DNA of 64,000 nucleotides, taken from Lepidodermella squamata (taxonomy: Eukaryota; Animalia; Gastrotricha). The notes beneath the pieces are model-generated. The model did not search any database. It worked only from the letters and a program-made list of their open reading frames with translations, and was not told the DNA's origin. The stretch's first letter is position 1. Every line of letters begins with the position of its first letter. Made by a program: the position numbers and the translations under genes. Location: the NCBI GenBank assembly GCA_047495785.1, contig JBLDXI010000012.1:558001-622000 (forward strand), in the 5' to 3' direction. Shown here piece after piece: positions 979 to 44,451 of the stretch.

Positions 979-1374
979 CTAGTCGTCCGCATCTTCCTCC
1001 AAGTTGATTTTCGAACCAAACTTAGCATAGAGACGAGCCTTAAGCTCAGTTAGCGACGCCGTGTAATCTTTCAGCGTTAGTTCCAATTCAGCAATTCGTT
1101 TATTCGTGACAGCTTTGTCAACTTCAAGGCGCTTTTGTACTTGCACAGGTGATAATTCGAAGAAAACTTCCCCGAGTTGATATGGAACCTTGCTATCCTC
1201 ATCAAGCAGTGCGATTTCATCGACAGATTCGTAAGCATCCTCCAAAGCTTTCAAGTAGGACTTCTTAGCATCGAGTTCACCCTTTGCCTCCTTGAAATTT
1301 GCATTTGTTGTGGCAAATTTATTGATACACTGCTGATCTTCGAAGGTGACTGCAGCATCGCCTGTTTGAGCCAT
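979..1374 (-). CDS. PFDN4: Prefoldin subunit 4
   Basis: Single-exon 131 aa ORF with VTFEDQQ.INKF, VPYQLGEVF and LKARLYAKFG.KINLE motifs. Confidence 0.95.
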   Translation of the reverse strand: MAQTGDAAVTFEDQQCINKFATTNANFKEAKGELDAKKSYLKALEDAYESVDEIALLDEDSKVPYQLGEVFFELSPVQVQKRLEVDKAVTNKRIAELELTLKDYTASLTELKARLYAKFGSKINLEEDADD

Positions 1375-3476
1375 AGTCGGTATAATTTAACGAAAATCTA
1401 AAAATCATAGGCAGAACTAATCAGAAAACGCACGATAATCGTGTCAAATCCTACGAGTCGTACACAATAGCTTCCAGAAATGGCACAGGTAAACTCAAAT
1501 ATAACACGAAGCATTTCGAGCACTGTCGATCGTCGCGTGTCACTTCGATAATAGTTAAGCGGTAGAGCAAATTGAATTATGCGAATAGAATTTATCCTTT
1601 CGCTTGACACACAGCTGAATTCTACCAGCATGCTCTAGAGCAAGGATTAAATAATTGGGAAGCAATAGATAGAACGATAGCGTCAAAATAATGCAGGTTT
1701 AAGGTTTCCCAAAATCCTTATATCAATTATAAAAGTAAGAAATTAACGACGACCACATAATGGAGTGTGGATAAACGAATACATCTGGCCTCCGGGTATT
1801 ATTCTTCTCTTTCTTGATCATTATTTTTACCTTCACGCTTGCACATTCATCACTGACAAACAAGCTAAAATAAAGTGCTCATGCTGAGGCGTCCGAGATT
1901 AAAGGGTTTATTTCTGTTCTGGGATTGAATTCTGCAGAAGATAGTGAAAGAAAAAATTGAAGAAAATGCTAAAAATGCAGAAACTCTTTATGAAGTCGAG
2001 CAATTTGATCACGAAAACACCTTTATACATCCGTGTGATGCCCCGACTTCCTGGCTAAGATCGGTAAGATTAAAACAAAACTGCCAGTTATTTGGCATTT
2101 ACTAAATAACTAATAACTCTTCAAAATTCCCGAGTCAAAGTTGCGAAGATTATTTAGCAGGTTTGTAGTATTCAGAATGGACTCGTCGTAAAATCATTAA
2201 AACAAGAGAAGCGCAATTGTAACCATCTGGGAGCTGGGAGGACAAAAAGCTCCCAATGCTGGTAACTCTATGCCAATGGCTCAAAATCTTAGTCTTTTCA
2301 ATAAACTGCACCTGCACAAGGTAAGCAAAAAGGGCATGACATCAACCTCCAAAAATAGAAAGGTCGCCTGTCGCCTGCGCTGTTGTTGGAAAATCGGCTG
2401 ACAAGATGAACAGCAGATGTTGTGAGATGCGTTGCGCGGCAATCGTCTCCATAAAATTTAGACCTATAATAAATAGAAAATTTACTATTTGATCTTATTT
2501 GCTAGCAAGATTGAATTTAGTATATCGCGCAATGGTATTTAAAAATTATATTTTTTCTATATTGCAGGGTAACAATCCGCATCGAATGAAAATCACAGGG
2601 ACTCCGTTCTCTTCAATAAAGATGTTCGGGTATGAAGTTCACCTTTTTTCCTACCACTCAAAAATGCTCTCAATGCAAATGCACTAATGCTTTGCCGTTT
2701 GCATCGTAGGTTCCCCAGAACCAGAACTGAAAGGCAATCAAAAAGTAAGAAGGGATAGGAGATGGGAGATATGTTTGGGCATGTTGTCCTTTGCCCTTTG
2801 TTCCGAGTGCTAAGCGCTGAATGTTCTTGACTCTTTTTCCGACTGTGAATCCACCGGAGCAGCCTTCAAGCTAAATAAGTTACGCAATGAAAGCTCTTGT
2901 AGCTTGCAGGAGTACTTGAATCGCCTCCTCCATCCTCCAATTTCGTTGGTAGAAGTGCCCTCTCAGATGACTCAACACCCCACCCCCAACTAAACCTAAC
3001 CCTAACCATATCGGAAAGTCCTCATCGGAAGTTATTATGTCTACCGATGTCCCGTTTTGGGCGATTTGATGAAAACGGGGTTTCTGTACATTGCTACTGC
3101 ATTCTGACATCAGAATCGTTATCTACGTGGTCGATTTACCCTAACCAGGCCATTTTCAGGTCAAAATCGTGAGTTATGCATATTGGGGGAGGAAAATTTG
3201 GAGCTATGCATCAAAGGGGCACGGCCTCAATGGTGCATAATCGTGGCACACTTCGGCTGATCAACAATGGCTCATCGGCCACATGTTGCATAATCGTGAG
3301 CTTTTGTGGGGTGACTAAGGGGACCCTAAGACACATCCCAGCGCAAACCGCTTCGAAAAAGACCCAACGGCTGATGAGAAACAAATTTTTAAAATTTTGA
3401 CCCCTCATTTATGCATCATTAGAAGACTGGTTAAAAAAATTGTATTTTTTTCAAAAAATGTTATTCTCTACAGAAA

Positions 3477-3926
3477 TATATGTCGTATCGTATAAGGCAA
3501 TCCCTCCAATGGCCGATAGAGATATCTCAATGAGCAATCCGAATTGTTCCCAACGTCATTTTCAGTTATTTTAATCATTTTTTTAAATTTGGAAACCAAG
3601 CAAGATTACAGAATAGCCCTTCGCCTATCTAGCAGAGCCCACTTTCCCTAATAACTTGTTCCGCATCTGTGTGTTTCATGAGTTTCTAAAAAGCTAGCGC
3701 ATTTTCACTGTAACTGTCTTCTGGCCTTCTGGGTCCATTTAAACTCTCTATTAATCAATTAGAAGTCTAATCGATAGGGCTATTCGGGCTCTTTAATATG
3801 TGATGGATTATAATTCAATAACCTGAAGGCGGATGAAAACATCAGTCAAAAAGTAAATTTCCGATTGCTCATTGAGATATCTTTATCGGCCATTGGAGGG
3901 ATTGCCTTATACGATACGACATATAT
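3477..3926. mobile_element. MITE (non-autonomous DNA transposon, probably Tc1/mariner-type with TA target)
   Basis: Near-perfect ~65 bp terminal inverted repeats (tatatgtcgtatcgtataaggcaatccctccaatggccgata... at 3477-3543 and its reverse complement at ~3860-3926), TA-rich junctions, non-coding interior. Confidence 0.85.
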
Positions 3927-4234
3927 ATTCAATTTATTGGAAAGGTCGCGTGAAATTAGCACAAATGCAGTTTAAGCCGAAAAGTGCCAATTTTACCGTT
4001 ACAACCTCCCTTGTGCAAATTTAGGGTTGCCTATTAATTTAATCAACATAGAGGGAACATGAAGAGAATCGTTTCTACTTAATTTTAGACAAAAGGGCTT
4101 CGAAAAATCAGCTTTCTGCTAGCGTCCACCATCTAGTATATTTGTTATCCGATGGCCTGCGAATGTTGAAGTAGCTAGAATATATTCAATGAATTACACA
4201 CTTATTTCTAGACGCTTAACCCTTCGTTTCTTAA

Positions 4235-4552
4235 ATGGCAATCAAAGTTATTCTCGAAGTGATGGTCGGCATCCTGGCTTTTAGCTGGAGAGTACAAGGT
4301 CACGGCGGTGAACACGAAGGACATTCCATGAACATGGCCTCCATGAACGCTAGCGATGTCATGGTCGATAAGCCTCCCATGAAAATGAGTTTCTGGCCAG
4401 ATGTTTTCGCCTTCCTCGGAACTCTCATGGTTACCGCAGCAATTGCTGTACCATGTGCCATTTTCGCTAGCCGTTGCCAACGTGTTGTCGGCGTCGCAGG
4501 GGTGGCTGGCGGTCCTGAATATCACCGACTCAAAACTACTTCAGTCAAGTGA
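4235..4552 (+). CDS. Uncharacterised 105-aa type I membrane microprotein with His/Met-rich ectodomain (putative Cu-binding)
   Basis: Intronless ORF: signal-peptide-like N-terminus (to VQG), HGGEHEGHSMNMASMNAS...MKMSF, one hydrophobic helix (VFAFLGTLMVTAAIAVPCAIFA), tail with YHRL. Acceptor ttctAG (4210-4211) before the ATG, AATAAA at ~4752. Confidence 0.7.
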   Translation: MAIKVILEVMVGILAFSWRVQGHGGEHEGHSMNMASMNASDVMVDKPPMKMSFWPDVFAFLGTLMVTAAIAVPCAIFASRCQRVVGVAGVAGGPEYHRLKTTSVK

Positions 4553-4808
4553 TATGGACGGCAAATGTAAACATGTCATCATTTGTTCAAGTTTATTGTT
4601 TTATATCGACTATTCGCCACCTATGGAATTTTAAATTTTCAAAAGCTGTGAGCTGCACTAATGGGGTTTTGTTATAGTCACGAGTGCTTAATGTAAATTT
4701 TTATGATCACTTATTGTAACTCAAAGAAGCAAAGAAAACGTGATTATTTTTAATAAATATGCAAAATGGATTTCAGGAAACATGTAGAGTCTCATTATCA
4801 ATTTAAAT

Positions 4809-6277
4809 ATGCCAGCAAAATCAACCTGTTGCGCTTCTATAAATTTGGCTCTGGTGAAATACTGTAAGCTAAATTATTGCATTGTCATCGATATAAATAA
4901 AATGGTTTCCATGGACTTCCAAGGGGGCAAAGCTGACGATGTAAACATGCTGCCGCTAAATGACTCGCTGAGTATTACGCTGCAAAACCCGGAGGTAAGA
5001 TGTTGCTGGCTTTGAGTCTTCAAAATAATACTGAGCGTTTTTCTAAAGGTTATTACTACGTGTGAAATTGAGTTAACTGCCATTTCATCTGGGCATAAAT
5101 TTGTCGTCAACGGAATAGAAAATAATAATGATAAACGAATTCTGAAAATGATTCAAAAAGGTAAGCCACCGTTTTTAGTTTTTAGCTATCAACTATTAAC
5201 CCGGCGACTTCACTGCTCACACCTCAGCGAAAGAACTGTCAAAGGGCGAATCAGTATTCCAGTCACACTGTGTATCAGTTGATTCGTCGAATTCTTTTCC
5301 GACCGGAGCAGGAATGGCTTCAAGTGCGTCTGGATGTGCTGCTGTTGGTACTTGCCTCGTTTGTTTCCAAGTATTAAATTCGAATTATTTTGTTGTTTAG
5401 CGTTATGCCTGGCGAAACTAGCAAAGCTTTCCATTAGCGATGCTGGAATAATAGCCCGGTATTTTATTTTGCAGTGGAAAACGATCAGTGGAGAATATTG
5501 ATAAATAACATTTCAGGATTGGCTCTGGAAGTGCATGCCGAAGTGTTTACGGCGGATTTGTACACTGGTCAGCTGAAACTGGCTTACCGCAGCAGATTTT
5601 TCCGAACAATCATTGGCCAGAACTGAAAGTCATTATGCTTATAGTGAGTGCCGTTTCCAATTATTTGATGGCTATTAAAAATCGCCCAAAATTTAGCATT
5701 CCGAGTCGCCAAAAAATACAAGCAGTCGAGATGGTATGGCTGTGAGTGTCGCAACTTCAAAATTAATGGCTAGCCGCTTGGAATGTGTGAAAGAACGCAT
5801 CGAAGAGATGAAATCGGCCATCGCACGAAAAGATTTCCCAACCGTTGCAAAAATTACTATGCAAGAAAGCAACCAACTCCATGCGATATGCCTAGATACC
5901 TGGCCGCCTCTTGTTTATCTCAACAATACATCATTCGAAATTATTCGCTTTGTTCATTTCTTGAACGATTTAGCGGGGAAAACAATGGTAGGTGTAATTA
6001 ATAAAATGTATTCGTATACAATTTTTTGTTGTATTTCAAGGCTGCGTATACTTTTGACGCTGGTCCGAATGGCTTCATCCTCACCTTGGAACAAGATATT
6101 CCCGTGATGATGAGCTGTTTGAAGGCATGTTTTTTATCTCCAGCAGAGAACATCAAAGAACGGTATGAAGAGCCTACTTTCATTCAAAATTTATCTGCTC
6201 AATTTCCGGAAAAGTCGAAAATTACCCGGGTTGTTGTTGCTGATGTGGCTTCGGATCCATTGGTGTCTATTAATTGA
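4809..6277 (+). CDS. MVD: Diphosphomevalonate decarboxylase
   Basis: Multi-exon: NLALVKY|WGK..., [15 protein letters not shown] (GHMP ATP loop), [47 protein letters not shown]. Confidence 0.95.
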
Positions 6278-6317
6278 TGATTAAAAATGGTTGATGTAGG
6301 CGTTTTATTGAGTTGAA

Positions 6318-7855
<1,538 letters not shown>

Positions 7856-11024: not shown

Positions 11025-14000
11025 ATGCATCGTTGGCTGTCAACTGTGCTCATAGCGAGCACCTTAGGATCCAGCAGCCTCGTATCGGGTAAATCTCGTT
11101 AACCTTATTGAAATTCGAATATGTTTAACTATAACCGTGTTTTCAAACAGCCGTCGTTAAGGAGTCTTGCAACGGCCAAGTTAAGGTGTTTACAGCCGCG
11201 TCCGGATACTTCAACACACCTAATTATGGTTTCGGCAACTATGCGCCAAATGATAGATGCTTCTGGCAAATTCTCATCAATCCCGGCCAGAGGATCAAGT
11301 TTGTTCATTTTTACATTTGAAATTCAAATTTTCTTATCAAACATTATTCAGGCTCGAATTCAAAGCTTTTGGAACTCCGTCGTTTGCCGACTGCTCAATG
11401 GGTGACCGAGTCGCTATTTACGATTCGGACCAAGAAAACCCGGAGAGCCTCCTGGGAACTTTCTGCGGAACTTCCATTCCAGGGCCGTTGATCTCACGGA
11501 GTAACAAACTGTTCGTGAAGTTCGTTTCTGACCGCGAGAGCGAAGGTCTTGGCTTCTATTGTCTCTACAGCGCTATCAGCGGTAACTTGAATGCGTCAGA
11601 GCTAAATTTGACTTGATTTCGCTTTCTGTTAACTAGACCGGCCTCAAACCATTCCACCGGCAAATGCGGGTTTTAGGGCAGGCGTGACGCCTTCTGGCGC
11701 CCACGACGTCGCCCCGCCGATGGAGCGAGTTGGTCCGAAGTGTAACGGGAAAGTGTCTGTCCTTACAGCGCCGTCTGGCATCATTCAATCGCCCAACTAC
11801 GGCATCGGCTCTTACTTCCCGGACGATACCTGCTATTGGCAGATCATCGCCATTCCGGGCAAGATCATTCGCCTGCAGTTGATTGTGATGTCGTTGGAAG
11901 AGGGCACTGGCTGCCATAACGATTACACCACAATCTACGACGGAGCGACTGAATCTGCGCCACTGCTTCAGGCCTATTGCGGTCGCAAAAGTGTCCCATC
12001 GGAATTGCTCACAACTGGCAGTGCCATGTTCATCAAGTTCCGAAGTGACCCCAAGAGCCAAAGGGATGGTTTCCGCTTCTTGTACAGCCTTGTCGGTAAG
12101 TAACAGCTAGGTAACAACGAGGACCTTGGAATTCAAATTAAATTGTCAAAATACGGGGGAATGGGGGGAACTTTTGAAACTTTTTGACCTAGTTTTCCGA
12201 AAGGCACTTCGAGTTATTTTATAGATGACTGATTTTCTTTTGTTTTAAGACCGGCCATCTTCGCCCACCCCTCCTCCAAAGCCTCCAACAACCCCAGTTC
12301 CCAAGGATAAGTGCGCAGGTCGCCACCAAATTTTCACCACCAAGTCTGGCTTCATAATTTCGCCCAATTTCGGCTACGGTGAGTACTACGCCAACGATGT
12401 CTGCTTCTGGCAGGTGCTCTCGCCCGATGGCAACAAAGTCAAGTGAGTTACTTGCAATGCTTTATTCATTCTTACTCATGACTTCACCTGTTTTCAGACT
12501 GAGCTTCCAAACTTTTGAAGTTGAGGATGGATTTGCTTGCCCGAAGGACGAACTCGTGATCTACGACGGTCCTTCGGAAATGTCTCCTCTGATCGGCTCT
12601 TTCTGCGGTTCGAACAAGCCCGCGACCATCATCTCCAGCAGCAACGGCCTGTACTTGAAATTCTCCACGGACGCCCATGCGCAATACATCGGCTTCAAGA
12701 TCTTCTACGAATTTGTTGAACCGCCGAAGAAGGAACGCTGCAATGGTGAAATGAACACGTTGACCGAAACATCCGGCTTCATCTTCTCGCCGAATTACGG
12801 CAAGGGCGACTACCCCGAGGACGATATTTGCCACTGGCAGATCATTGGGCAGGAGAACACGCGTGTTCGTCTCAAGGTCGAAAGTCTCGTCATGGAGCAA
12901 AGCCCGGATTGCACAAAGGACTATCTCTCAGTTTGGGATGGACCTGGTGAAAACGCTAACAAGATGAAAGTTTTCTGCGGATCTGTTGCTCAGGAGGTTC
13001 TGCTTAGCACCGGATCTTACATGTATCTGAAGTTTAAGGCGAACGGTGACGGTAACTATCCAGGTTTCAAGTTGTACTACGAGGTAGTCGAAGCCCCGCC
13101 CAAGGACAAATGCAACGGAAAAACTGAGGTATTGCACGACCTGCAAGGCTACTTCCAGTCACCCAATCTTGGCAACGGCCTCTACTACAACAACGACCTC
13201 TGTTTCTGGGACGTTCGCGCCCCACCAGGCCAGCATATTCGCATGATTTTCGAAAAGTTCGACCTCGAGGACGCTGACAACTGCCCGCTGCACGATCATC
13301 TCGCAATCTACGACGGCCAGAGCGAAGATTCGGCGCAGGTCGCTGATCTTTGCGGTCATGATTTGCCGAAAACAATCGAATCAAGCGACAACGCCATGTT
13401 CGTCAAGTTCCAAACCGACGCTGCGAGACGTGCGGCTGGTTTCCGCATCTTCTACGAATTCTTCCAACCGGCTAAGACTGAACCCATCCTGCCACCCCCG
13501 CCAGAGCCTTGCAACGGAAAAGAGTTCCTCCTAACCGGCACTTTTGGCTCATTCAACTCGCCAAACTTTGGCAGCGGTGAATACTTCCCAGATGATAACT
13601 GCTATTGGCTGGTATCCAGTGATTACTTCAACCGGATCAAGCTGACATTTGACTCTTTTGACGTCGAAGCTGACCCTCAATGCTTGCGCGATCGCGTTAT
13701 TGTCTATGACGGCCCGACCGAACAAGCCCCTGTCCTGGGAACTTTCTGCGGCTATTCGCTCCCGAATCCGATCGAATCGACAGCGGCTCAACTGCTGGTC
13801 AAGTTTGAGTCTGACTCGTCCGCTCAACGAACTGGCTTCAAGGCAAGTTACGACACAGAACCAGTAGCGCCAACTTCGGCCTTAGCGGATCCAAGGTTCA
13901 TGTTCTACCGAGGCGCTCCATGGGCGCCGCCCCCAGTTCAGCCTCCTGTTGTCGCCAGCATGCCCGGCCTCAAGCCAGTACCTGTTGACACGTCTGTCCC

Positions 14001-16236
14001 GCTGGTTCGAAACGACCAAATCGACCCTGCTGGCCATGTTGGAACACAGATGTCGGCGAGCGCCGCTAACCGCCCGGCTAAATGCAACGGTGCAGTCACC
14101 CTGGTCAAAGCTACGGCCTTCCCGATGTACGCGCAATCGCCCAACTTCGGCAGCGGCAACTACTTCCCTCAGGACACATGCTACTGGTTGATTCAGTCTG
14201 ATCTTGGCACAACGATTCGCGTCAATTTCTTGTCGTTTGATCTGGAAAATGGCGGCCGTAACTGCCCGAACGACTACGTTGCGTTGTACGATGGCGAGGG
14301 TGATCAATCGCCGTCTCTTGGTCGTTTCTGCGGCTCGAACCTGCCGAGAACTATTCAGAGCCATGGCCGCTCGATGTTGGTCGAATTCAACAGCGACCAG
14401 TCGAACGAGAAGGGCGGTTTCAAGTTCGCATACGAAGCTGTTCAGGCGCAAGGTCAAGCTCCAGCTGCTGCAGGTTTCGGCGGCTCGGCTTTCAACCATT
14501 CAGATGCGGAGAATTCGTGGCTACGACACAGTTTGAACTCTCTGGGAGTTGGAGCTGCCGGGGTTTCTGGTCTCAATCTACCTCGTCTCCCGAACGTCGG
14601 CGCTGCTGGTGGTGTCGACATTCCGATCCCAGGCGTGCCGCCGGTACCTGAGGTGCCAGGCATCCCTCAACTTTCTCAGCTGCAATTAGCTGGTGCAGGT
14701 CACCAGGGCGGAGCTGGCTTCGCTCAACAGGCGCAACAACATCAACAAGCCCAACGCCAACAACCTCAACAGCAGCAACAGCAGCAACAGCAACCACAAC
14801 AACAGCAGCAGCAGCATCAACAACAACAACAACAACAGCAACAGCAACAGCAACAACAGCAAAATTTCAACCAACAGCGGGTCAACAATAACCAACAAGG
14901 CGCAGGCGCCGGCCAAGGTATGGCTAACTTCCCAGCCAACCCCGCTCAACAATTCGTGCAGCAATTTGTCCAACAACAATTCACTGGCCCAACTTCAATG
15001 CCAGTTGTTGCCGGTAACAGCTTCAACAACTTCGCCGGCGGTATCTTGAACCAACGGCCTAGGAGTAGCCGGAAGGCGAACGGAAATTTCGAAGCGGGTA
15101 ACTACGAAGGTGGCGCTGAGGGCGACGAGAACGAGGCTGATGGTGAGTTTAGTGAGGATGAGCAAAATGCGGAGAGTGAATTCGAAAATAACCAACAAGG
15201 CCAGAACCAAGGTCAGGAGACTGGTAATTTCGAAGATTCCGGCTCGACTTTCATGAGCGTTCCAACTGGCCCGCAGCATGAAGAGGTCGCCCACAACAAC
15301 CGCCTCGTTTCGAACAAAGCCTGCCGCGGCCGTATCGTCTCGTTAGTCGCGCCATCAGACGGCGCTTTCTTCCGTCTCGCGTCGTCAAACGGCGAGGATG
15401 GCAACTATCTGGCGAACGATAACTGCAACTGGTTCTTATCTGCCGCTGCTGGACAGGTGTTGCAGATCAAGTTCTCGTCGTACGAAATCTCCGGCTCGGA
15501 CACGTCGGCCTGCGAAAATGACTACATCGCCATTTTCAACGGCGTCAATCGCAAGGCGCCGCTCATCGGCCGTTACTGCACGCGAAACCCGCCACCATCC
15601 GTTGTCGTCACCAATGGCTCTTATGCCTTCATCGAATTCAGCGCTGCCAGCAAATCGCCGCAGCGAGGCCACGGCTTCGTTCTCGATTTCAAACAGCTCG
15701 ACACGCCCGAACATGGTATGCGAAAAATCCTTCAATTTTGTCAATTTTTTAATGGAATTTTTTTAGCTCATACCGAAAATGCTACTACAACCACGACTAC
15801 AACAACAGAGAAGGCGCCTGAAGCCACTGAGCCAGCGCCAACTGCCGCTGCCTCTCAGGCCCAGCCGCGTTGCCTCGGCCGTCAGATGCTGTTGACCGCT
15901 GAACGTGGGGCTATCGAAGCGCCAGTCAACGAAGTTGGCAACTACTACCCTCTCGACACCTGCATCTGGCGGTTATCAGTCGACGCCGGCAAGAAAATTC
16001 TGTTCCACTTCGACCGGCTCGCAATCGAGGAAACGCCTCAGTGCCAGTATGACGCGGTTCGCATCTACGACGGCCCATCATCGCAAGGCCAGCAAGCGCC
16101 GTTGATCGGCGGCTTCTGCGGTGCCGTGCTGCCCGTCAACCCAATCACCACCTCGTCGAACCAGGCTGAAATCGTCTTCAGTTCAGATTCAACCGTTGAA
16201 GACAAGGGCTTCCTTCTAACCTATCGTGTTGTTTGA
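11025..16236 (+). CDS. Secreted multi-CUB protein (9 CUB domains) with a Q/N/G-rich low-complexity insert
   Basis: Signal peptide exon 11025-11088 (MHRWLSTVLIASTLGSSSLVS). Nine C.G....SPN(Y/F)G.G.Y...D.C.W...C..D....YDG...FCG...F.SD...GF units, short introns (e.g. 15716-15766). No protease, EGF or TM segment seen. Confidence 0.9.
14725..14880 (+). repeat. Coding CAA/CAG repeat (polyglutamine tract)
   Basis: Imperfect (CAR)n tract encoding QQAQQHQQAQRQQPQQQQ...QQNFNQQ. Confidence 0.95.
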
Positions 16237-23103: not shown

Positions 23104-26100
23104 ATGACGGCCCTATTTTGTGCCCCAGCTGCTGTCGAGATCGACAGCCCATTGACCGCTAGTGAGAAAGATGAGTTATTGTCATATGACAGCGTCATGT
23201 TCGGATTTTGGAATCCTTGTGATCCAATCGAAGCTCATCGAAAACGACTGATAACGAGAGTTTGTGCTTCCACTTTTACGTTTGGATTATGAGATTGATT
23301 GCAATATTTTTCAGGGAATTCAACATTACGAGCGACAATTGCAAGAGAACAAAGCCAAAAATATTTTGAGTGAGGCGGAGTTGACTAAATCTTTTCTTAT
23401 TTTGGGACATCTGAACTTGCTGGTCGGCGATTTCGCTAAAGGTTAGTACATCATCGGAATAAACTCAATTGAGTTCGATTTTTCGCATAAATAGTTGTTA
23501 CTTATATGGTTGTGAGAGAAAACATACTAGTATTTCGTCTTTGTCACTTGATATTAGGTAGAATTTCTAAATTTTTTTGTTTTGCAGCATTGTCAGCTTA
23601 TCAGCATCATTTTCGCCGCCAGCCAGATTATTGGAAAGACAGCGCGTTTCTATACGGCCTTGGTTTAGTCTATTTTTACTACAATTTATTGGAATGGTAA
23701 TCTATTTTTCTTTAATATCAACTCTTAATAGAGACCTTTGCTTTCAGGGCTACGAGGGCATTCGTTCAACTGAGATCTACCGATCCTCATTTTGTTCGGA
23801 TCAAAGAGGTCAACTTGAGACTCGGCATGGCGTACAAATTATTGGGAGATTATCCAAAGAGCTTGATGGTTTGTTTCAGAGATTTTATAAATGCTTGCGT
23901 AAAAGATTATTTTCTTTTCAGTACTTTCAACTTGCTCTCGATGATCCCAGCCCCTGCACATTATCAAAATATGAAAGTGAGTGATGCGATTTAGTTGAAA
24001 TCATTTAGCTTTATTGTTCTTAACCTCATGTAGTTGACTTTCACATATGCCATCTGCACGAAAGCCAAGGCGAAGCGGTGAAGGCGAAAGATTTCTATTT
24101 ACTTCTGCTGTCACACGAAGATCTCCCATCGCAGCTACGAACTTCTGTTTTACGCCAACTAAGCTGGCTTTACATGTGCGGCGAACAACTCGGCGAAGTT
24201 AATCAGAGAAATCAGATTGCCCATCAGTACTTGCAAGAAGCTGTTCGTATAGACGCTAATGACCCTCAAAATTATTATTTGTTGGGTCGCAATTTCGCTG
24301 CCCTTGGCATGGTGCAGCAAGCGTTTCATTGCTATAGAAGTGCAATAGACAAGTCCGAAAGTAACGCCGATACGTGGTGTTCTATCGGAGTTTTGTACCA
24401 GCAGCAATGCCAGCCGATGGATTCGTTACAGGCTTACGTATGCGCTATCCAACTCGACCCTCAGCACATCGCGGCGTGGACGAATTTGGGAATTCTCTAC
24501 GATCAGCACCAACAGTTTCGCGACGCCCTGCGTTGTTATCAAAACGCGCTGCAGTTCGGCCGCTCCGCGCCGAAAAATGCAGCGTTGGAGGAACGTCATC
24601 GCGCTTTGGACGATACTCTTCAGCGCGTTCCATCCGATTGCCTTGATACCACCAACCGAACCTTGCCAACCCTAGACGAAGCGTGGAATTTGCCGATACC
24701 CAGTGATCTCAATCATCGCCAGCAACAGAAGCAGACACCGAATGGCCCTAACGTTATGATGCCTGGGCAGAGCCTGCAAAACCCAATGTATCCAGCTTGG
24801 TGGCCATCGCCTCAAAACCGGCTACAAAACGGCCCTCCAACTGTACCAGGCGGGCCTAATAACAGCGTTCATCTCGGGTCGGCATCTAGCGTTACCCGGG
24901 CAATGCAAATTGCGGCTGTTCAAATGAATGAGCGAAAGAAAAAGCGTAAAAAGAAGGATAGCATGAGTGCTTCGAACAACCCAGAATCAGTTTCACCTGC
25001 CTTGGGTAACAATAGCTCAGCCACACCTTTGCCAACCGAGCCCATTCAGTCGCAAATGTTGCCGAACCAGGAAATGATGACTGGTACTGAAAATAATTTG
25101 ACGGCCTCGGCAAATAATCACCAGGTTGCAAATGATAGCGTTCAGCCTGAACCTGGCAGCACAAATAATAACAATAATAACGGAGATATTTCAGGACAAG
25201 CAGCTCCGATGGAAATCGACATTCATCGTCCTGATATGGGCGGATCTCGCTGTGGCTTCGGCGGTTCGAACAAAACGCCTGAAGAAAGGGCGAGCTCTTT
25301 ACAGAAAGAAGAAGAGCAAAACGCTGTGAAAGCTAGCAATGGCGGAAAAAGCGACGCGTTATGCGAATTAGTGGGGCAGCCCCACGACTTGCCTGAAGAG
25401 AGCAAGCGGCCGGTTATTTCGATCGAAATGACTGCCGAACAGATTTTCAATGTATGTAAAACCAGCCTGCCTTTCAGTCGGCACCACGCTATCTACCTCC
25501 GCGACACTCTGCCAAAAATCGCGCGACCTCCTGGACCTACATTGCCGAAAGACCAATTAGTTCCGCCGATACCTACCCTTATTGTTGAAACTAAGCGTGA
25601 TGCGTTGTCTGTTGAACTGCGTGATTCGTGTCTTGCCCAACCGATTTGCATTATCCGCGGCTTGACTAATGCGCTGAAAATGGACTTGTCGCTGTTTTCG
25701 ACAAAACGGCTTGTCGAGTTGCATCCAGATTTTCCCGTCGAAGTGCGCACTCAATTTTTACAACACGCCGACGATAACCGCGACTCGACAGGGGTGAGAA
25801 CGTGGCGGTGTGAAAGCGCTAGATCTTTCACGACCATTCAACGTTACGCTGTCTATCAGGCTCAAACCTTTCAAGACTCGTTGAATGACGAGAAGGCGAC
25901 AGTGTTTAAGACGTTGGGCAATGGAGGCGTGAAAAGTGAACCTCACGATCACATGACCTCACCTACTTCGCATTCCTTAGGCGGGCCGCTGCTACCTAAC
26001 CACACAGGTCAGGTCCGGAAGCAAATCAAATTTGGAACCAATGTAGATTTGTCGAATGAGGAGAAGTGGCGAATTCATATCCACGAATTGACCAAATTGC

Positions 26101-27017
26101 CGACCTTTTTGCGCGTTCAATCGGCGTCGAATATGCTGAGCCATGTAGGTTATACCGTGCAGGGCATGAATTCGATTCAGCTATACATGAAAGTGCCTGG
26201 TTGTCGGACACCTGGTCATCAAGAGAATTTAAATTATGCAAGTATCAACATCAATATCGGCCCTGGCGAATGCGAGTGGTTCGGGGTCGCGGAGGAATAT
26301 CTCGGCCCATTTTATGCGCTGTGCAAGGAGCAAGGTGTTGACTTCGCTAGTGGGTCCTGGTGGCCCCTACTCGAGCATTTGTACCGAGAAAACATTCCTG
26401 TTTGTCGCTTCATTCAACGCCCGGGCGATATCGTATGGGTCGGTCCGGGCACTATTCACTGGGTGCAGTCAAACGGCTGGTGCAATAACATTGCGTGGAA
26501 CGTCGGCCCGCTGACCGTCGAGCAGTACAACTCGATGGTTGATCGTTACGAATTCAACAAAAGTGTGCATTACAAGTCGCTGGTGCCTATTGTTCAGTTG
26601 ACGTGGAATTTGGCGCAGAATTTGCGCATATCTGACGCGGCCTTACACCGGGCGATGAAAACTCTTCTTGCTCAAAGCATCCGGCAACTAGCACTATGCC
26701 ACCAGTTCGTCGAAGGGTTAAGCAAGAAAATTGTACCCTATCCACGGAAAGAAAACGAACCAGCTCACTATTGCGTCAACTGTGAAGCCGAAGTCTTCAA
26801 CATGCTATTGGTGCGCGAACGCGAGAAGAAGTACCTTGTTTTCTGCTTGGACTGTGCCATCAAGCTGGACGCTAAACTGAACACATTTACGGTCTTGAGC
26901 CAATATGAGCTACGCGACTTGTTCGTCGCATTCGATGGATTCCAATTAAAGGTAAAAGACTTTAATATCTTTGAATAATTGATTCAATAATTTTTGTCAT
27001 TTCAGCCTCAAAACTGA
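23104..27017 (+). CDS. KDM6A: H3K27 demethylase UTX/KDM6A
   Basis: N-terminal TPR exons ([48 protein letters not shown]), JmjC with TPGHQEN...[18 protein letters not shown], Zn finger [12 protein letters not shown]...CLDCA. Final micro-exon 27006-27017. Confidence 0.97.
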
Positions 27018-34591: not shown

Positions 34592-37500
34592 TCAATAATC
34601 ATTATTTGCGTTGGCGATGTTGAAGCCAAGCTGGAAGCCCTTGCCGTGAGCCGACGCGAGCCACGTCCTCCAGTCCGCCTTAAACTGTACAGTTACGGCT
34701 TGCGACGTCGAGTAAATGGGTCGTCTATCCGGGTAGTTACCAGAGCAGAACTGGCCGAGCGCTGGCGAGTTGGCCGACGAACCGTCGCGAAGGGCAACAA
34801 AGCTGCCTAAGCACTGATCGTTATCGCCGGGGATGTCCATGATAGTGAAGACCATTCTGAAAAAAATGTTATACTTGAATAAGAGAATTCAAACTTTTGG
34901 GAACGAGCTTACTGAATGCGCTGATCGCTGCGTGGGGCAACAAGCACCCATGTGCAAGTATCGCCAGCTTGGTAGCCACCGAAATCGAAGTTGGGCGAGT
35001 GAAGGATCTTTTATAAAAGATGCTTAAATCATGCTTGCACTTCGGAAATAATTCTTTATGTTACCTGGACAGTTTCGGTAGCGGCAATTGCGAAGGTTTG
35101 ACCACTGCAACGACCACGGAGTTGGAAGTTGGCGTTAGGCTGGGGTCCGGTGGGCGTTCCAGGAACACGGATGGCCTTGTATTGGAGAGTGAAACCAGCC
35201 CATTGGTTCTGAGCATCACTGGCGAAGCGAACAACGGCAAAGCGTTGGCTGGTCTTGATTTCAGTGAGACCAAGCTGAGCTTCTGGTGGCGTGTTGCCGC
35301 AGAAACGGCCGACGCGGGTTGTGTTCGGCCGGGTGTCATCTTCACCGTTGTAGATTTCAACGAAGTCAGGGCAGTCATCACCATCAGCCGGCGAGGCTTG
35401 ACCAGTGCGGGCGAGCGGGCTCTCGAGACGGAAGGTTGGGAAGCGGATGCGGAGGACAAAGCCGAGAGGAGCTTCAATCTGCCACTTGCATGAGTCGCTA
35501 GGTGCGTAAGTTGTCATGTTGGAGTCAGAAGCTGGCATGTAGACTGTCGACCAGTCCTTGTCGTTGGCGATGACGCGGTAACTGACGCCGTTGCACTTGG
35601 GCACTGGCGGCTTGGTCGGCTGAGGTGCTGGCGATGAAGTGTAGGCAAGGGCGATGTTCTTCATTGCCTCTGCTTCCGCCTTGAAGCTGATCTTGAAACC
35701 TCGGCCGGTTCCGCGAGCATTAGCGGCGAACTGGATGAAGATGGAAGATCCAGAAGAAATGATGCGCTGGTAGTAGAAGTCACCGCAGAAGCGACCGAGC
35801 TCCGGCGCGGAGGGTGATGAGCCATCGAAAACTTGAACGAAGTTCTGCGGGCAAGAGTGGTTCGGTCCAGCGGGTCCGACGTCGAAGTCCTCGACAACAA
35901 GGTGGATGCGTTCGTTGCCGCGGGTATCGCCATGGGAAGTGATCAGCCACGCGCAGGTGTCCGAAGTTGTGCCAGTGCCGTAGTTGGGAGACGTCAGCGA
36001 GCCCATGCGGAACTGGTCAGCTGTGAGGGTGTTGATCTTTCCGGAACAAGGCGATGGTGCCGCGAAGTTGGTGAACGGAGCAATTGTCGACGCTTCGGGG
36101 GCCGTTGGACTAGTTTGTTTAAACGAGAGGCGGAAACCAGAGTACTGTGTATCGGTATCAGATCGGAAGACAATCGTCGCGCTATTTGTCGTCGTGCGGA
36201 TAGACTTGCTGCGAAGCAGACGATCGGGTCCGCACATCGTGGCTTTAAGGTCGCGGAAGAAGTTATTCTCGGTGGTGACGTCGATCTCGCGATTGTAGAT
36301 CTTGAGCGAATCGCCGCCGCAAGTCGGCAGAGCGCCGTCGAGCTCCATCTCAATAACATTGATCTCAATAACCATGCCAGCGTCAGCTTGGATGATCCAG
36401 TAGCACTGGTCATTGGCAGCGTACATCGCAACGCCGTAATTCGGCGAGGTGACGTACTGCTCTGTGGCCAACGCCTTGATCTTCTTGGTCTCACCACCGC
36501 AGCTCTGTGGACCCGGGCGCTGGGCTTGGCCAATAGAGGGCGCCTGGATAGCTGGAGCAGCGGTCTTATCCTGAACTTGGAAGGAGAGCACGAATCCACC
36601 GAATTCGTTGGTCGAGTCCGAACGGAAGTTGATCAACAGACGGCTGGTACGGCTGTAAAACATTTTTCCGACGTTTTCACTGCTGCCGCAAAGGTGAGCA
36701 AGAACAGCGGGCGGAACTGGGACATCACCATCATAAACATCGAGGTAATCATAGGGGCAAGGATCGCTGCGAGGATTGCGAACACCTGGCGCCGGAGCTT
36801 CGATGTTCATAGATGTAATAGTAACACGAATCTAAAGATAATAGGAACCTAAAAAATCGAATAATCAACTTTTTAAAGATAAATTACGGTGAGTCCTGGA
36901 TCAGTCCACAGTCTCCATGTGCAGTTATCGCTGGAGAAGTACTTTCCGTTGTTGAAGTTCGGGCTGCGGATGGTGCGGGACACAGAATCAGCGCGGAGAA
37001 CCATAACGTTACCGTTGCAGCGGGTGTCAAGGGCGCTGGGGACCAAGTCAGTGCTACCAGGCGCGCCGACATCGACACGCATGTTCTGAAGAACTTCCTG
37101 TCTGTCAATCGGAAGGGTGTCGAGGGGTGAATCCGGGCCGGTGGTTGGGGCATCTGCGACACTAACTTAAAATCTGTTGAACTCATCGAAAAAAGTCTGA
37201 CTTACCGACGGCTTGGTAATTGATACGGAAACCACGGAAATGTCTGAAAGCATCGCTGCTGAACACGACAAGAGCCAGGCGGCCAGGGGTGGTAATGGCT
37301 GGCGGGATGATGCTGCCGCAGTATTTACCAAGCTGACCAGCGCCGGCTGACACACCGCTGAAGACTTGAACGTTGTCATCAGCGCAGACGCTGCTGCCAG
37401 TTCCGACCTCGAAAACGTCGAAAACGATCTTGATGCGTTTGTTAGGATCGGCAGCGATCAGCCAATAGCACTTGTCCGATGGGTAGTATTCGCCGAATCC

Positions 37501-40445: not shown

Positions 40446-43444
40446 TCACTGCCAGGCTTTTTTCAGCTCCTTAAGCTGGACTAGGTACCGGAATACGAAT
40501 GTAGCAGCCAGTAGGCCGACTGTGATCATAATAATGAATGCGTAATCGAAGTCTTCTTTGAGCATGTCGAACATTTTCGAGGGCCAAACGCGGGCAAAGT
40601 ACAAGTCCAAGCCCGAGACGAATAACAGGCTGGTTGATTCGAGGCCGGAAGATGCCGTATACATGTAGGAGATGCGGTCCAAACTCCGGTTGTAGTTGAC
40701 AAACGACTCGGGGTGCATGAGGACCTCAGGAATGTAAGGCGGAATGCCTTCCTCTGCGTGCTCCTGCGTGGCGGTGAGCAAACGCCGTGGGTTGAGCAGC
40801 AACTTCGGCACCTCTAGAATGCGACCCGAGGCCAGACCGAGAAGGACTGATCGCGAAGTAATCCCGCGCCGTGAGGTGGTGATCACCATCGATCGAACCA
40901 CATCATTGAGCACGTACGCCTGTTTCAGCACCATCGGAACATCCGGACCGTAATAGTCGAACGAAGAAAACATGGTGGCGTTGCGTTCTTCTTTGCCTTC
41001 GAATAGCTCGATTACTGCGACTTCAGTTCTGCGCATTTGCGAGTTCCAATAGCTGTAGGTTACGAAATTTTCCGCATTCACAGCAAACACAGGGCCTCGA
41101 GCGTGGCGATGCTGACCTTGGTAGTAGAACCGACCAGAGACAGAGTCGACAAGGTACAGAGAAATCACGTCTGGAAAAATTACCCACAATTAGTTGTCGA
41201 AATATGAAATCATTATTTATTTTTACCTTTATCAGTGTCCTTCCGATCTGTGGAAAGTGTAGAAGTGACGACGAAAACGAGATTCGGATTCAAATATCGA
41301 TATAGCACGGTTCGGTCGGCTAGTACGACAGCTTTCGAATAGACTCGCTCGTCCGGCCTGCGCTCAGCCACAGTCACTATATGCTCGCCAGCCGGTAACT
41401 TCACAGACCAGGTTTTGGCAAGGTTTATGAAATCATTTGTCGAGGTCTGTCCAATCTGAAAACCGGTTATCTCAGGGTTGTTGATAATTTTCTCCGTAAT
41501 CAGGTACAAATACACGTCGCTGGAGGTAGTTTTCACGAAATTTGTCAACGATTGCGGATACACATAGACCGAAGACCGAGTCGGTAGAATGAACAAAATA
41601 GGAATAATCTTCTGCTCAGGATGAGAATGCGTAAATGGCCGAATAACACCCGGCAAAAACGGCAGGGTCAACCGTTCGTCAACTTTGCCAGTCAAACCAT
41701 CAAACGTCACTAAGCAAACTTGGTCGTTAGAAGACGCATCTTGACCTACAACCGCGACTAGTGACGTCATGCCAGTGACGTCTGTGCCACGGAGAGGGAA
41801 AATTGACAGAGGTCTACAATCGCCGAGAAGAAGGTCCCAAACCACTACACCAGTCAGCGAGTGAATAGCGTAGACCTTGCCAGGTGTTGTTAGAACTATA
41901 ATCAACTTTTCTAGGCCGAATTTATCACGATGGAGCTCCACCGAAACGTCACGCCCATCACCAGTGTGTCGGCTGATTTGATGATGCAGAAGGCTGTGCT
42001 TAGTATCCTTATGAAAATGAAGTAAAGCCCCGAAACCTCCGTTAGAAAATGTGTCGATCAAGTCGAAGACAGTTGAGAACAGAATGTCACTTTCAAACCG
42101 AACTCGCCGGGCGAACGACACGAATATATTAGAACTCTGAGACACAACTTCGTCGGCGATATCGGCGAGATACCCTGGAAGAGGGAGGTCGAAGAAAATC
42201 GATGAGACAGCTTGACCGAGGCCTTCGTCGCGAGTCCATTTGACCGCGCCAGCCTGGACAAAAACCAGAGTATCGTACTTGGTTCGGATGAGGCTCCTGA
42301 GAATAGGAGCGTTGCCGCCTGCAGCTGCTCCTCGTTTTTTGAGAACGATCGGGAACAAATTTGCAATTCCTTCATTCATCAGCTCTCGAGACGTGAAAGC
42401 CGAATCGCCCACTTGGCTGGTAGTTTGTTCGTCGAGGAGAGCGAGTCTGTAGCTAAAGCCGCCGTCATTCAGCAGGGCAAAGGCCGCATCTTTCCCGTTA
42501 TAATCCACCGTGGAAGCATCAACGACAGCAGCGCCTGATTCAAATTTGAAGCGACCTTGATTGAGTAAGTTGCAAAGGATCTTTTTGCCGTTTTCATAAG
42601 TGAGCAAAGCGGTATTCGAGACAACTTTCATGTCAGCAATTTTATTGCCAGGTGTCTGAGTCAGCGCGCATGACTCACCATCCACATATCCAGCAGTTGA
42701 CGACGCAGAAAATTCGCGGAAGGTGACTGGGCCAAGCATTTTTCCGCTCTCGAGTAAGCAAACGAATGACTGGCCATTGGAAAGACTTCCACAGCTGACG
42801 ATTTGATCATTTAAATTACCGCTAGATAACTTGACCAATTTTGCGCTGTTTTCAACAGCAGCTTGGTAAACAGTCACAGCTCCAGAGATATCCTGGGAAA
42901 TGATGCAGCCAGTAATTGCGTCGTTACATCCGACAATGAATTGAGCAGCATTTTGGTTGGAAGGGATCGGCATGCACTTGTAATTGTTCCCCCTCAGCAA
43001 ACACATATTGCCATCAGTTGCGAATAATATAGTGTCTTCGGTAGTTCTAGTAAGTTTAATAGACTCGCTGTCGCTGATTGGTAGAACGAGTTGAGTTTTC
43101 AATATGCCCTCGGGATAAAAACACCGAGCAACATTCCCCGAAAGAACAAAAACGCAATCACTGTACAATGTGACCAGCGAAACTCGTTCACCCTGACTTA
43201 ACGAGTGGCGCCATATCACACTGCCGTCTTTCGCAGCAAGAGCTCCAATTACACCGGTTTCGGCTGCGGCGACGAAAATCGCTCTGCTTCCGGTACCATC
43301 AGGCACAGCATCATAAGAGGCAAACGATACTCGACCGACGTAAGACTGCTTCCAATCAAAAATACCAACCTGGTCTTCGTAAAGAGCTAATGAATAACCG
43401 AATAATAGCCCGAAGAATAAGCTCTTTAATGCAGTTAAATTCAT
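40446..43444 (-). CDS. EMC1: ER membrane protein complex subunit 1
   Basis: Signal peptide then ALYEDQVGIFDWKQ; WTRDEGL; RDKFGLEK; VLADRTVLYRYLNPN; SGLESTSL...FDMLKEDFDY plus C-terminal TM ending LKKAWQ. One intron at ~41172-41227. Confidence 0.97.
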
Positions 43445-43725
43445 ATCTAAAAATGAAAAATACACACATCGTCAAATAAATATTTAATTGATTATGTCGT
43501 TAACATAGTGGTAAATAGCACCAATCGGATGCACAACTCGTGGTAGAAATTGGAATAACAAAAACTATTTGGGGTAGTGTAAATTTCAAGGTAATCAAAA
43601 CTGGAGAGCATTGTGATTTTAAAAAGCTATGAGACGCAAAGCAGCAGTGTTGCACAACAAAGACAGCTGAGAGTTCAGCAGGATTATAAGATCAGATTCG
43701 ATGGTAAATATTGCGAAGAAAACGA

Positions 43726-44451
43726 TCAGGCTCGCGATACACCATCATTCAACTCGTTTTTCAAACGATTAATGACATGGCGTATTCCACCAGCAGGATC
43801 TCCCGGGAACATGCCACGAACATTCACCAAAATATTTTTCAACTTGTCATTTGGAACTTTGGCACTAGCGGCAGGTCCGGAGGAAACATACAGCATGTTA
43901 TCTTCGGCTGAATAAAGAATGAGGAAATGCTCGCCGCAATGCGTAGCGCCTCGGAACCATTTTCTTTTGAGCTGTTCAGCAAATGACCGGGAAGCTCGAA
44001 GGCGAGCATCAGCATTTTCCTCGCGGCCGAATTCTTGAATATGCGACTTTCCCATTTTGCGTAAAACAGCGACAGCAATCAAAAAGTTTTTGTCGCCATT
44101 GTCCGGAGGGCAGACTCGTCGAAAAGCAGGAGCGCCAGGATGAGCTAAGTCTTGAACTGATGAGCACGGGCACTCGAAGTCGACCTGCTGGCTAAGTACT
44201 TCTCGCAGCTCTTTCTCCAGTGAAAGCGCCTCTTCAATAGTCAGCAGCTGATCTGGATCGCAAACCAAAGCCGAGAAACCTTTTTCTGAGCTCAGCTGAC
44301 GACCAGCAACACGAGAGCATCGAGCAACATCGTGCTTTAGATGGGGGTATGAGTCGGGCAGCCAAGTTTTAGGCTCATCTGCTTTTCTGGCGTTCTCCGC
44401 GCAGCCTCCACAGACAGCCAGCGATAAAACAATGCACACTTTAAGATGCAT
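43726..44451 (-). CDS. MOLO-1-like TPM-domain protein, apparently secreted
   Basis: Signal peptide; W.PDSYP...C.R...VCDPDQLL; IAVAVLRKM; FAEQL...W...C...LILYS.ED..LY.S.G pattern recalled for the MOLO1/TPM family. No C-terminal TM. Confidence 0.7.
   Translation of the reverse strand: MHLKVCIVLSLAVCGGCAENARKADEPKTWLPDSYPHLKHDVARCSRVAGRQLSSEKGFSALVCDPDQLLTIEEALSLEKELREVLSQQVDFECPCSSVQDLAHPGAPAFRRVCPPDNGDKNFLIAVAVLRKMGKSHIQEFGREENADARLRASRSFAEQLKRKWFRGATHCGEHFLILYSAEDNMLYVSSGPAASAKVPNDKLKNILVNVRGMFPGDPAGGIRHVINRLKNELNDGVSRA

Follow-up and report, generated by a model that had tools for sequence, protein, structure and literature searches.

The window, the 64-kb stretch of Lepidodermella squamata DNA analysed here, contains an open reading frame of 105 aa at 4235-4552 on the plus strand, running from ATG to TGA (open reading frame list and sequence). 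An in-frame TAA directly precedes ATG 4235, so no upstream extension of the frame is possible. The initial annotation had described the product as a microprotein resembling the CTR1 ectodomain and as a possible endocytic copper receptor. The open reading frame and the motifs that it listed (VQG/H, the slash marking predicted cleavage, HGGEHEGH, MNMASM, MKM, NAS and YHRL) were present in the sequence as described. The features of the locus are given below with their coordinates in the window, their strand and their basis.

From position 3, minus strand: Rsm22 gene, upstream
982-1365, minus strand: prefoldin gene, upstream
4196-4211, plus strand: pyrimidine-rich tract and AG splice acceptor (AG 4210-4211), with no partner donor in the window (RNA contigs X2 and X3)
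4212-4234, plus strand: short 5′ untranslated region without ATG, with the in-frame TAA at its end (sequence)
4235-4552, plus strand: complete, intronless coding sequence of 105 codons plus stop (open reading frame list, RNA contig X3, orthologue lengths of 105 and 97 aa)
4235-4300, plus strand: predicted cleavable signal peptide, residues 1-22, ending VQG/H (hydropathy, −3/−1 rule)
4301-4402, plus strand: ectodomain, residues 23-56, predicted disordered (composition, AlphaFold2)
4346-4354, plus strand: N-glycosylation sequon NAS (each family member has one mid-ectodomain sequon)
4388-4480, plus strand: invariant core, residues 52-82, running from SFWPD through the transmembrane helix to SRCQ and including intramembrane Pro73-Cys74 and juxtamembrane Cys81 (codon comparisons with the relatives' contigs L001 and L002)
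4403-4471, plus strand: single transmembrane helix, residues 57-79 (hydropathy, AlphaFold2 helix 54-85)
4472-4549, plus strand: cytosolic tail, residues 80-105, with GPEYHRLK at 4511-4534 and YHRL, a YxxΦ motif, at 4520-4531
4553-4776, plus strand: 3′ untranslated region, with AATAAA at 4752-4757 and the TTTCAG acceptor of the next gene (4771-4776) 19 nt later
4809-6300, plus strand: mevalonate-diphosphate decarboxylase (MVD) gene, ATG at 4809, introns of ~53-75 nt (GT..AG joints in RNA; Pfam MDD_C, 1.5e-32)

Hydropathy analysis placed the strongest hydrophobic stretch at residues 58-78 (best 19-residue Kyte-Doolittle mean, 2.14). Both hydropathy and AlphaFold2 bear out the single transmembrane helix proposed in the initial annotation, with one strongly hydrophobic stretch after the signal region. 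The AlphaFold2 model was of low confidence (pLDDT 53) and held two helices only, at residues 2-21 and 54-85, with the remainder unstructured; the ectodomain formed no secondary structure (pLDDT below 50). The cleavage site VQG/H is a rule-based prediction from the −3/−1 rule. The 34-residue ectodomain beginning at this site (residues 23-56) has a predicted His1, 3 His, 6 Met and 5 Asp/Glu, and includes the motifs HGGEHEGH, MNMASM and MKM. On the cytosolic side, YHRL lies 16 residues past the helix end. Among 38,046 open six-frame stretches in the 64-kb window, we observed a density of at least 9 His plus Met per 30 residues in one place only, the microprotein open reading frame. The His plus Met density of the microprotein is far above chance (binomial P ~6e-6).

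Four public runs were compared over positions 1500-7400 of the window. Two RNA-like runs, X2 and X3, came from different studies, and we consider them RNA assemblies because they carry GT..AG joints at which the ~50-75-nt introns of the following gene have been taken out. Contigs from these two independent studies spanned 4210 to ~4850. Run X3 gave a 290-nt contig that was gapless over 4210-4488. Run X2 covered 4258-4848 at a contig depth ~10x that of the neighbouring gene, but contig depth is a poor measure. The RNA contigs showed no splice joint inside 4210-4862 and no further coding exon. They cover the gene in both studies and lack the splicing to further transmembrane exons by which, according to the initial annotation, it might have turned out to be an ordinary transporter. 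The microprotein gene is real, transcribed and unspliced in its coding part.

The genome sequence at the acceptor upstream of the coding sequence is TTATTTCTAG, with AG at 4210-4211, 25 nt 5′ of the ATG. Contigs from X2 and X3 diverged from the genome at the same point (4209/4210), where they are preceded by identical foreign letters (24 in X2, 11 in X3) that end ...TTTGTGTCTA. These letters were absent from the whole 64-kb window, even with three mismatches, and an ordinary upstream 5′-UTR exon within 4.2 kb is ruled out because they are missing from it. With introns as short as 53 nt in this genome, a cis exon at a distance of over 4.2 kb would be unlikely, and we therefore prefer a trans-spliced leader. 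The foreign 5′ letters are most likely a trans-spliced leader ending ...CTA(AG), and the exon starts at 4212 provided that the leader itself ends in AG. A literature search found no paper on leader trans-splicing in gastrotrichs.

Relatives were sought with word-index searches, with a HMMER two-sequence profile over 1.84 billion protein representatives and with a profile word search. Only two credible relatives were found among the 1.84 billion representatives. The word-index search recovered P0001 (105 aa, 64% identity over the aligned part), which is encoded on a 1-kb Logan contig, L001. The HMMER profile pass recovered P0002 (97 aa, E 2.8e-22), whose locus is represented by two near-identical environmental contigs, L002 and L003. 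A 672-aa repeat protein, P0003, matched through 'TAAIAIP' on the helix (E 7.8e-4) and was rejected as a low-complexity chance match. Metagenome DNA scans and the profile word search gave no further members, and tblastn found no paralogue within the 64-kb window. The window protein itself had no self match in a public collection of 5.8 billion protein clusters. The family is very narrow, with three members found, probably all of them gastrotrichs.

Gene order was common to the window and L002/L003, with Rsm22 and prefoldin on the minus strand followed by the microprotein, MVD and a coiled-coil gene on the plus strand. The neighbour proteins were 41-70% identical between the window and these contigs. 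At the 3′ end of the microprotein gene, the acceptor AG of MVD is found at 4775-4776, and RNA-contig depth remained high across the 4652-4848 bin. The same layout occurs at 5440-5500 of L002 (AATAAA, ~24 nt, TATTTAG, then ATG). Judged from this arrangement, the microprotein and MVD genes look like a conserved operon-type pair. We also observed an X2 contig that begins at 4659 and is preceded by 22 T. These may represent the poly(A) tail of a transcript from the minus strand that ends in the microprotein 3′ UTR, or they may have arisen as an artefact of assembly or priming; near 4659, AATAAA was not evident on the minus strand.

Several other features were observed in the window and in the contig of the relative. 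High-copy repeats occupy 2879-4060, between the prefoldin and microprotein genes, with a contig depth of up to ~5,300 in a genomic-DNA-like run; loose ends and inverted joints are frequent there, and many of the copies have diverged. Multi-CUB proteins lie in very long uninterrupted open reading frames at 12379-16236 on the plus strand (7 CUB domains in 1285 aa) and at 35056-36810 on the minus strand (4 in 583 aa). A KDM6/UTX-type histone demethylase with TPR repeats and JmjC, KDM6 helical and GATA-like domains is encoded in a single 966-codon frame at 24078-26978 on the plus strand. At 41213-44451 on the minus strand, an open reading frame for an EMC1 N-terminal propeller adjoins one for MOLO1 (modulator of levamisole receptor). 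In L002, the intergenic region 5′ of the microprotein gene (4700-4830) contains several copies of a GTGGGTGGGT-type motif with no counterpart in the window, and the flanks of these two loci do not align with each other.

Comparison of the three members distinguished features that are kept from features that have drifted, as follows; conservation in 3/3 members has limited weight, since it comes from three sequences only.

Predicted cleavage before His1: window VQG/H; P0001 VFG/H; P0002 GLA/H; the −3/−1 rule holds in 3/3
Ectodomain His: window 3; P0001 3; P0002 2; kept
Ectodomain Met: window 6; P0001 4; P0002 4; kept, with MxM in all and MxMxxM in the window protein only
Ectodomain Asp/Glu: window 5; P0001 4; P0002 8; kept
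N-glycosylation sequon, mid-ectodomain: window NAS; P0001 NAT; P0002 NST; kept in 3/3
Juxtamembrane stretch: window MKMSF; P0001 ERLSF; P0002 SKLSK; not conserved
Phe-Trp before Pro-Asp: present in the window protein and P0001, absent from P0002; not conserved

All three members also share Pro-Asp before the helix, Pro-Cys inside it and SRCQ at its cytosolic end, as well as GPEYHRLK, a C-terminal Lys and a net acidic ectodomain. Ectodomain length across the family is 30-36 residues. Going by these alignments, the ectodomain sequence drifts freely while its composition and first residue are preserved. Preservation of composition rather than sequence is typical of CTR1 N-termini. The initial annotation had proposed a search for orthologues that conserve its motifs; the predicted His1, the Met clusters, the sequon, the transmembrane helix and YHRL are shared, and MxMxxM is not found outside the window protein. 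The CTR-like juxtamembrane MxMxF that it read in MKMSF did not hold up in the relatives. Overall, its interpretation is partly supported: its structural claims hold, and the copper function that it proposed is plausible.

Selection was assessed by codon comparisons. The 31-codon core from SFWPD to SRCQ had 16 synonymous-only differences and 0 amino-acid changes between the window and L001, with 16/17 base differences at third positions. Between the window and L002, 18/28 core codons differed synonymously only and 5 were changed, mostly conservatively (V/I, F/L, M/G, V/I and A/V). Synonymous sites were saturated (pS 0.74-0.83), and the flanks of the window and L001 did not align (~52% identity). 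GPEYHRLK was identical in 3/3 members although up to 5/8 of its codons differed synonymously. In the ectodomain, dN was ~0.9 and positions besides His1 aligned poorly. Strain variants in the C-terminal part were all synonymous (4/4), and one in the signal peptide was V11I. These data show that the coding sequence is under strong purifying selection, and that the strongest selection falls on the membrane helix, not on the ectodomain. A partner-binding helix is suggested first because of this distribution.

An antisense open reading frame of the same length (105 aa) lies at 4208-4525 on the minus strand. We rejected it as a gene because stops interrupt the frame in L001, and consider it a by-product of the sense frame.

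Family and structure searches agreed with the initial annotation, which had been unable to assign the protein to any family. Pfam gave no family for the window protein at E up to 10, including Ctr (PF04145) and FXYD (PF02038), and no Ctr or FXYD match for any of the three members. Vps55 matched one of the three members only (E 0.026) and was taken as chance transmembrane similarity; a pteridine reductase match in NCBIfam (15 bits against a cut-off of 322) was likewise due to chance. No PDB chain was matched at E 10, with a single sequence or with a profile, in a search that covered the FXYD chains in Na,K-ATPase structures. The best ESM Atlas matches (0.80-0.81) were to unnamed arthropod clusters and fell below a useful level; no named cluster was matched.

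The protein is not a CTR because it has one transmembrane helix, no MxxxM and no GxxxG. It is also not a histidine-brace domain protein (LPMO, CopC or Bim1) because its ectodomain is 30-36 residues long and predicted to be disordered. By these searches the microprotein belongs to an orphan family, and a literature search turned up no account of a similar copper microprotein with a single membrane pass. We suggest that it represents a new, very narrow protein family in which known copper-ectodomain chemistry would be reused on a new scaffold.

The reading that we tentatively favour, at somewhat less than even confidence, is that of a lineage-restricted type-I membrane glycoprotein with an outer segment that captures a copper-type metal, a helix that docks with a partner and a YxxΦ trafficking signal. 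Under this proposal, a small intronless gene, probably leader-trans-spliced, would encode a type-I single-pass membrane glycoprotein. Removal of the signal peptide would leave a mature protein exposing a disordered, acidic, N-glycosylated segment of 30-36 residues. This segment would begin with His and bear HxxH and MxM clusters, with chemistry like that by which the CTR1 N-terminus captures Cu(II) and Cu(I), and at the cell surface it may bind copper or another metal of similar soft or borderline character. The near-invariant helix (AFLGTLxVTAAIAxPCAIFxSRCQ) would most likely pack against a partner membrane protein or against its own copies, and the invariant tail GPEYHRLK would contain a YxxΦ signal through which adaptors sort or internalise the protein. 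We infer the cleavage site, glycosylation, metal binding, the partner and internalisation.

Published work on copper proteins is consistent with parts of this proposal. In hCTR1, the His-Met-Asp clusters of the N-terminus bind both Cu(II) and Cu(I) and drive endocytosis of the protein (PMC8867124), and the motif MxMxxM is selective for Cu(I) (PMC9117721). MNMASM of the window protein fits MxMxxM. In the copper 'histidine brace', an N-terminal His acts together with a second His (PMC10952591, PMC7529816). The predicted His1, the MxM clusters, the acidic ectodomain and the single sequon in 3/3 members speak for the proposal. Several observations speak against it: neither relative retains MKMSF, two His only are left in the third member, and Pfam analysis of the window showed no copper gene among the neighbours. 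The helix is also the most constrained part of the protein, which a copper-independent function explains equally well. For the tail, a distance of 16 residues from the helix is typical of endocytic YxxΦ signals.

The most substantial rival explanation dispenses with copper altogether. The microprotein could be a single-helix protein that serves a pump, channel or transporter as a regulatory or accessory subunit, like FXYD/phospholemman, KCNE or sarcolipin, with an ectodomain that serves as a tolerant spacer or as a pH or Zn sensor. We consider this doubtful, though a possibility to be taken seriously. It accounts for the concentration of constraint in the helix and its flanks (no change across 31 residues, with dS saturated) beside a drifting ectodomain, and for the loss of MKMSF. 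FXYD proteins have a comparable layout, in which a short ectodomain with a juxtamembrane motif is followed by a transmembrane helix and by Ser-Arg-Cys on the cytosolic side, a likeness that we treat as a lead only. The searches above gave it no sequence match to FXYD, to another Pfam family or to a PDB chain. In addition, a spacer does not predict that His1, MxM and acidity would survive in 3/3 members while the surrounding residues changed. A chance open reading frame or a non-coding transcript would fit the short length, the lack of a known domain and the equal-length antisense frame. This has next to no chance of being correct, as it is refuted by the third-position differences, the conserved length, the synteny and the RNA contigs, and the antisense frame is broken in L001.

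Two further rivals retain a link to copper. The protein may be a self-assembling minimal metal conduit, in which bundled helices would form thiolate rings from Cys74 (of Pro-Cys) and Cys81 that pass Cu(I) inwards from the ectodomain, a reading that we rate as highly unlikely. Its appeal lies in the invariance of Pro73-Cys74 and Cys81 in 3/3 members and in a helix rich in small residues (G, A, T and S) that is suited to tight packing; the CPx site of P1B-type ATPases offers a comparison for an intramembrane Pro-Cys. The five helix substitutions fall within one arc of ~160 degrees, a weak signal that would arise by chance at ~0.2. One Cys per helix, however, is a thin basis for a conduit, and Cys81 may merely be a palmitoylation site. 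The gene could instead be a remnant of a CTR gene, its ectodomain and first helix retained as a separate gene, as the His/Met-rich N-terminus and the resemblance of MKMSFW to MxMxF[YW], with which the Ctr domain begins, would suggest. That origin is very improbable: no member gave a Ctr signal at E 10, the likeness of MKMSFW vanishes in the relatives (ERLSFW and SKLSKV), and in CTR1 the MxMxF motif does not stand directly before the helix.

The metal-capturing glycoprotein with a partner-docking helix also admits a stronger form, which we regard as improbable. In this form the microprotein, of 10 kDa, would be a stand-alone minimal copper-uptake device, whose ectodomain captures Cu, which either delivers it to a CTR channel through the helix or passes it through an oligomeric Pro-Cys ring of its own, and which is internalised by the YxxΦ tail. 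If true, no dedicated endocytic copper receptor or accessory subunit of CTR would have been described in a metazoan before it. Animal copper uptake is generally ascribed to CTR1 alone, and we know of neither a CTR accessory subunit nor a distinct surface receptor for copper in metazoa. The microprotein is a simple, testable candidate that would combine CTR1-ectodomain chemistry with its own helix and an endocytic motif. The peptide is short enough for synthesis, and the whole protein could be expressed in yeast or cultured cells. The reach of the finding is limited by an obscure host without genetic tools and by a family of three members only, and it is modest unless function is shown. Even without a copper role, the gene is a clear case of a membrane microprotein that is confined to one lineage, strongly constrained and missed by gene callers and protein databases.

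Four known systems bear comparison with the microprotein. Like FXYD/phospholemman proteins, it is a type-I protein of about 100 aa or less, in which a short ectodomain with a conserved juxtamembrane motif precedes a strongly conserved helix and Ser-Arg-Cys at the cytosolic membrane face. In contrast to them, it shows no sequence or profile similarity, and its motif is (SF)WPD/VPD (SFWPD, SKVPD) rather than FXYD. To our knowledge, FXYD proteins are known from vertebrates only. With the type-I receptors that are sorted by YxxΦ signals (AP-2 cargo), the microprotein shares an invariant YHRL 16 residues past the helix, a likeness of the motif alone.

The predicted ectodomain resembles the N-terminus of CTR1/SLC31A1, which is short, disordered, glycosylated and acidic, with His clusters and MxM/MxMxxM just outside the membrane. 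The two proteins differ in their membrane parts. Ctr proteins cross the membrane with three helices and carry MxxxM in TM2 and GxxxG in TM3, whereas the microprotein has one helix and lacks both the MxxxM pore and GxxxG. The microprotein also has a predicted cleaved signal peptide, unlike CTR1, and its MxMxF-like stretch is unconserved within the family.

A mature N-terminal His, here predicted, is shared with Cbi1/Bim1 (LPMO-like X325), CopC and LPMOs, and with Cbi1/Bim1 the microprotein also has a cell-surface tether in common. Those proteins have folded beta-sandwiches of more than 100 residues in which the fold holds the second His, whereas the microprotein ectodomain has 30-36 residues and is predicted to be disordered. 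Bim1 is GPI-anchored, whereas the microprotein would be anchored by a transmembrane helix with a cytosolic motif. Cbi1/Bim1 is a fungal surface copper binder that acts in copper uptake through Ctr1 (PMC9258870). By analogy, this fungal protein would be the closest functional counterpart of the role that we propose for the microprotein.
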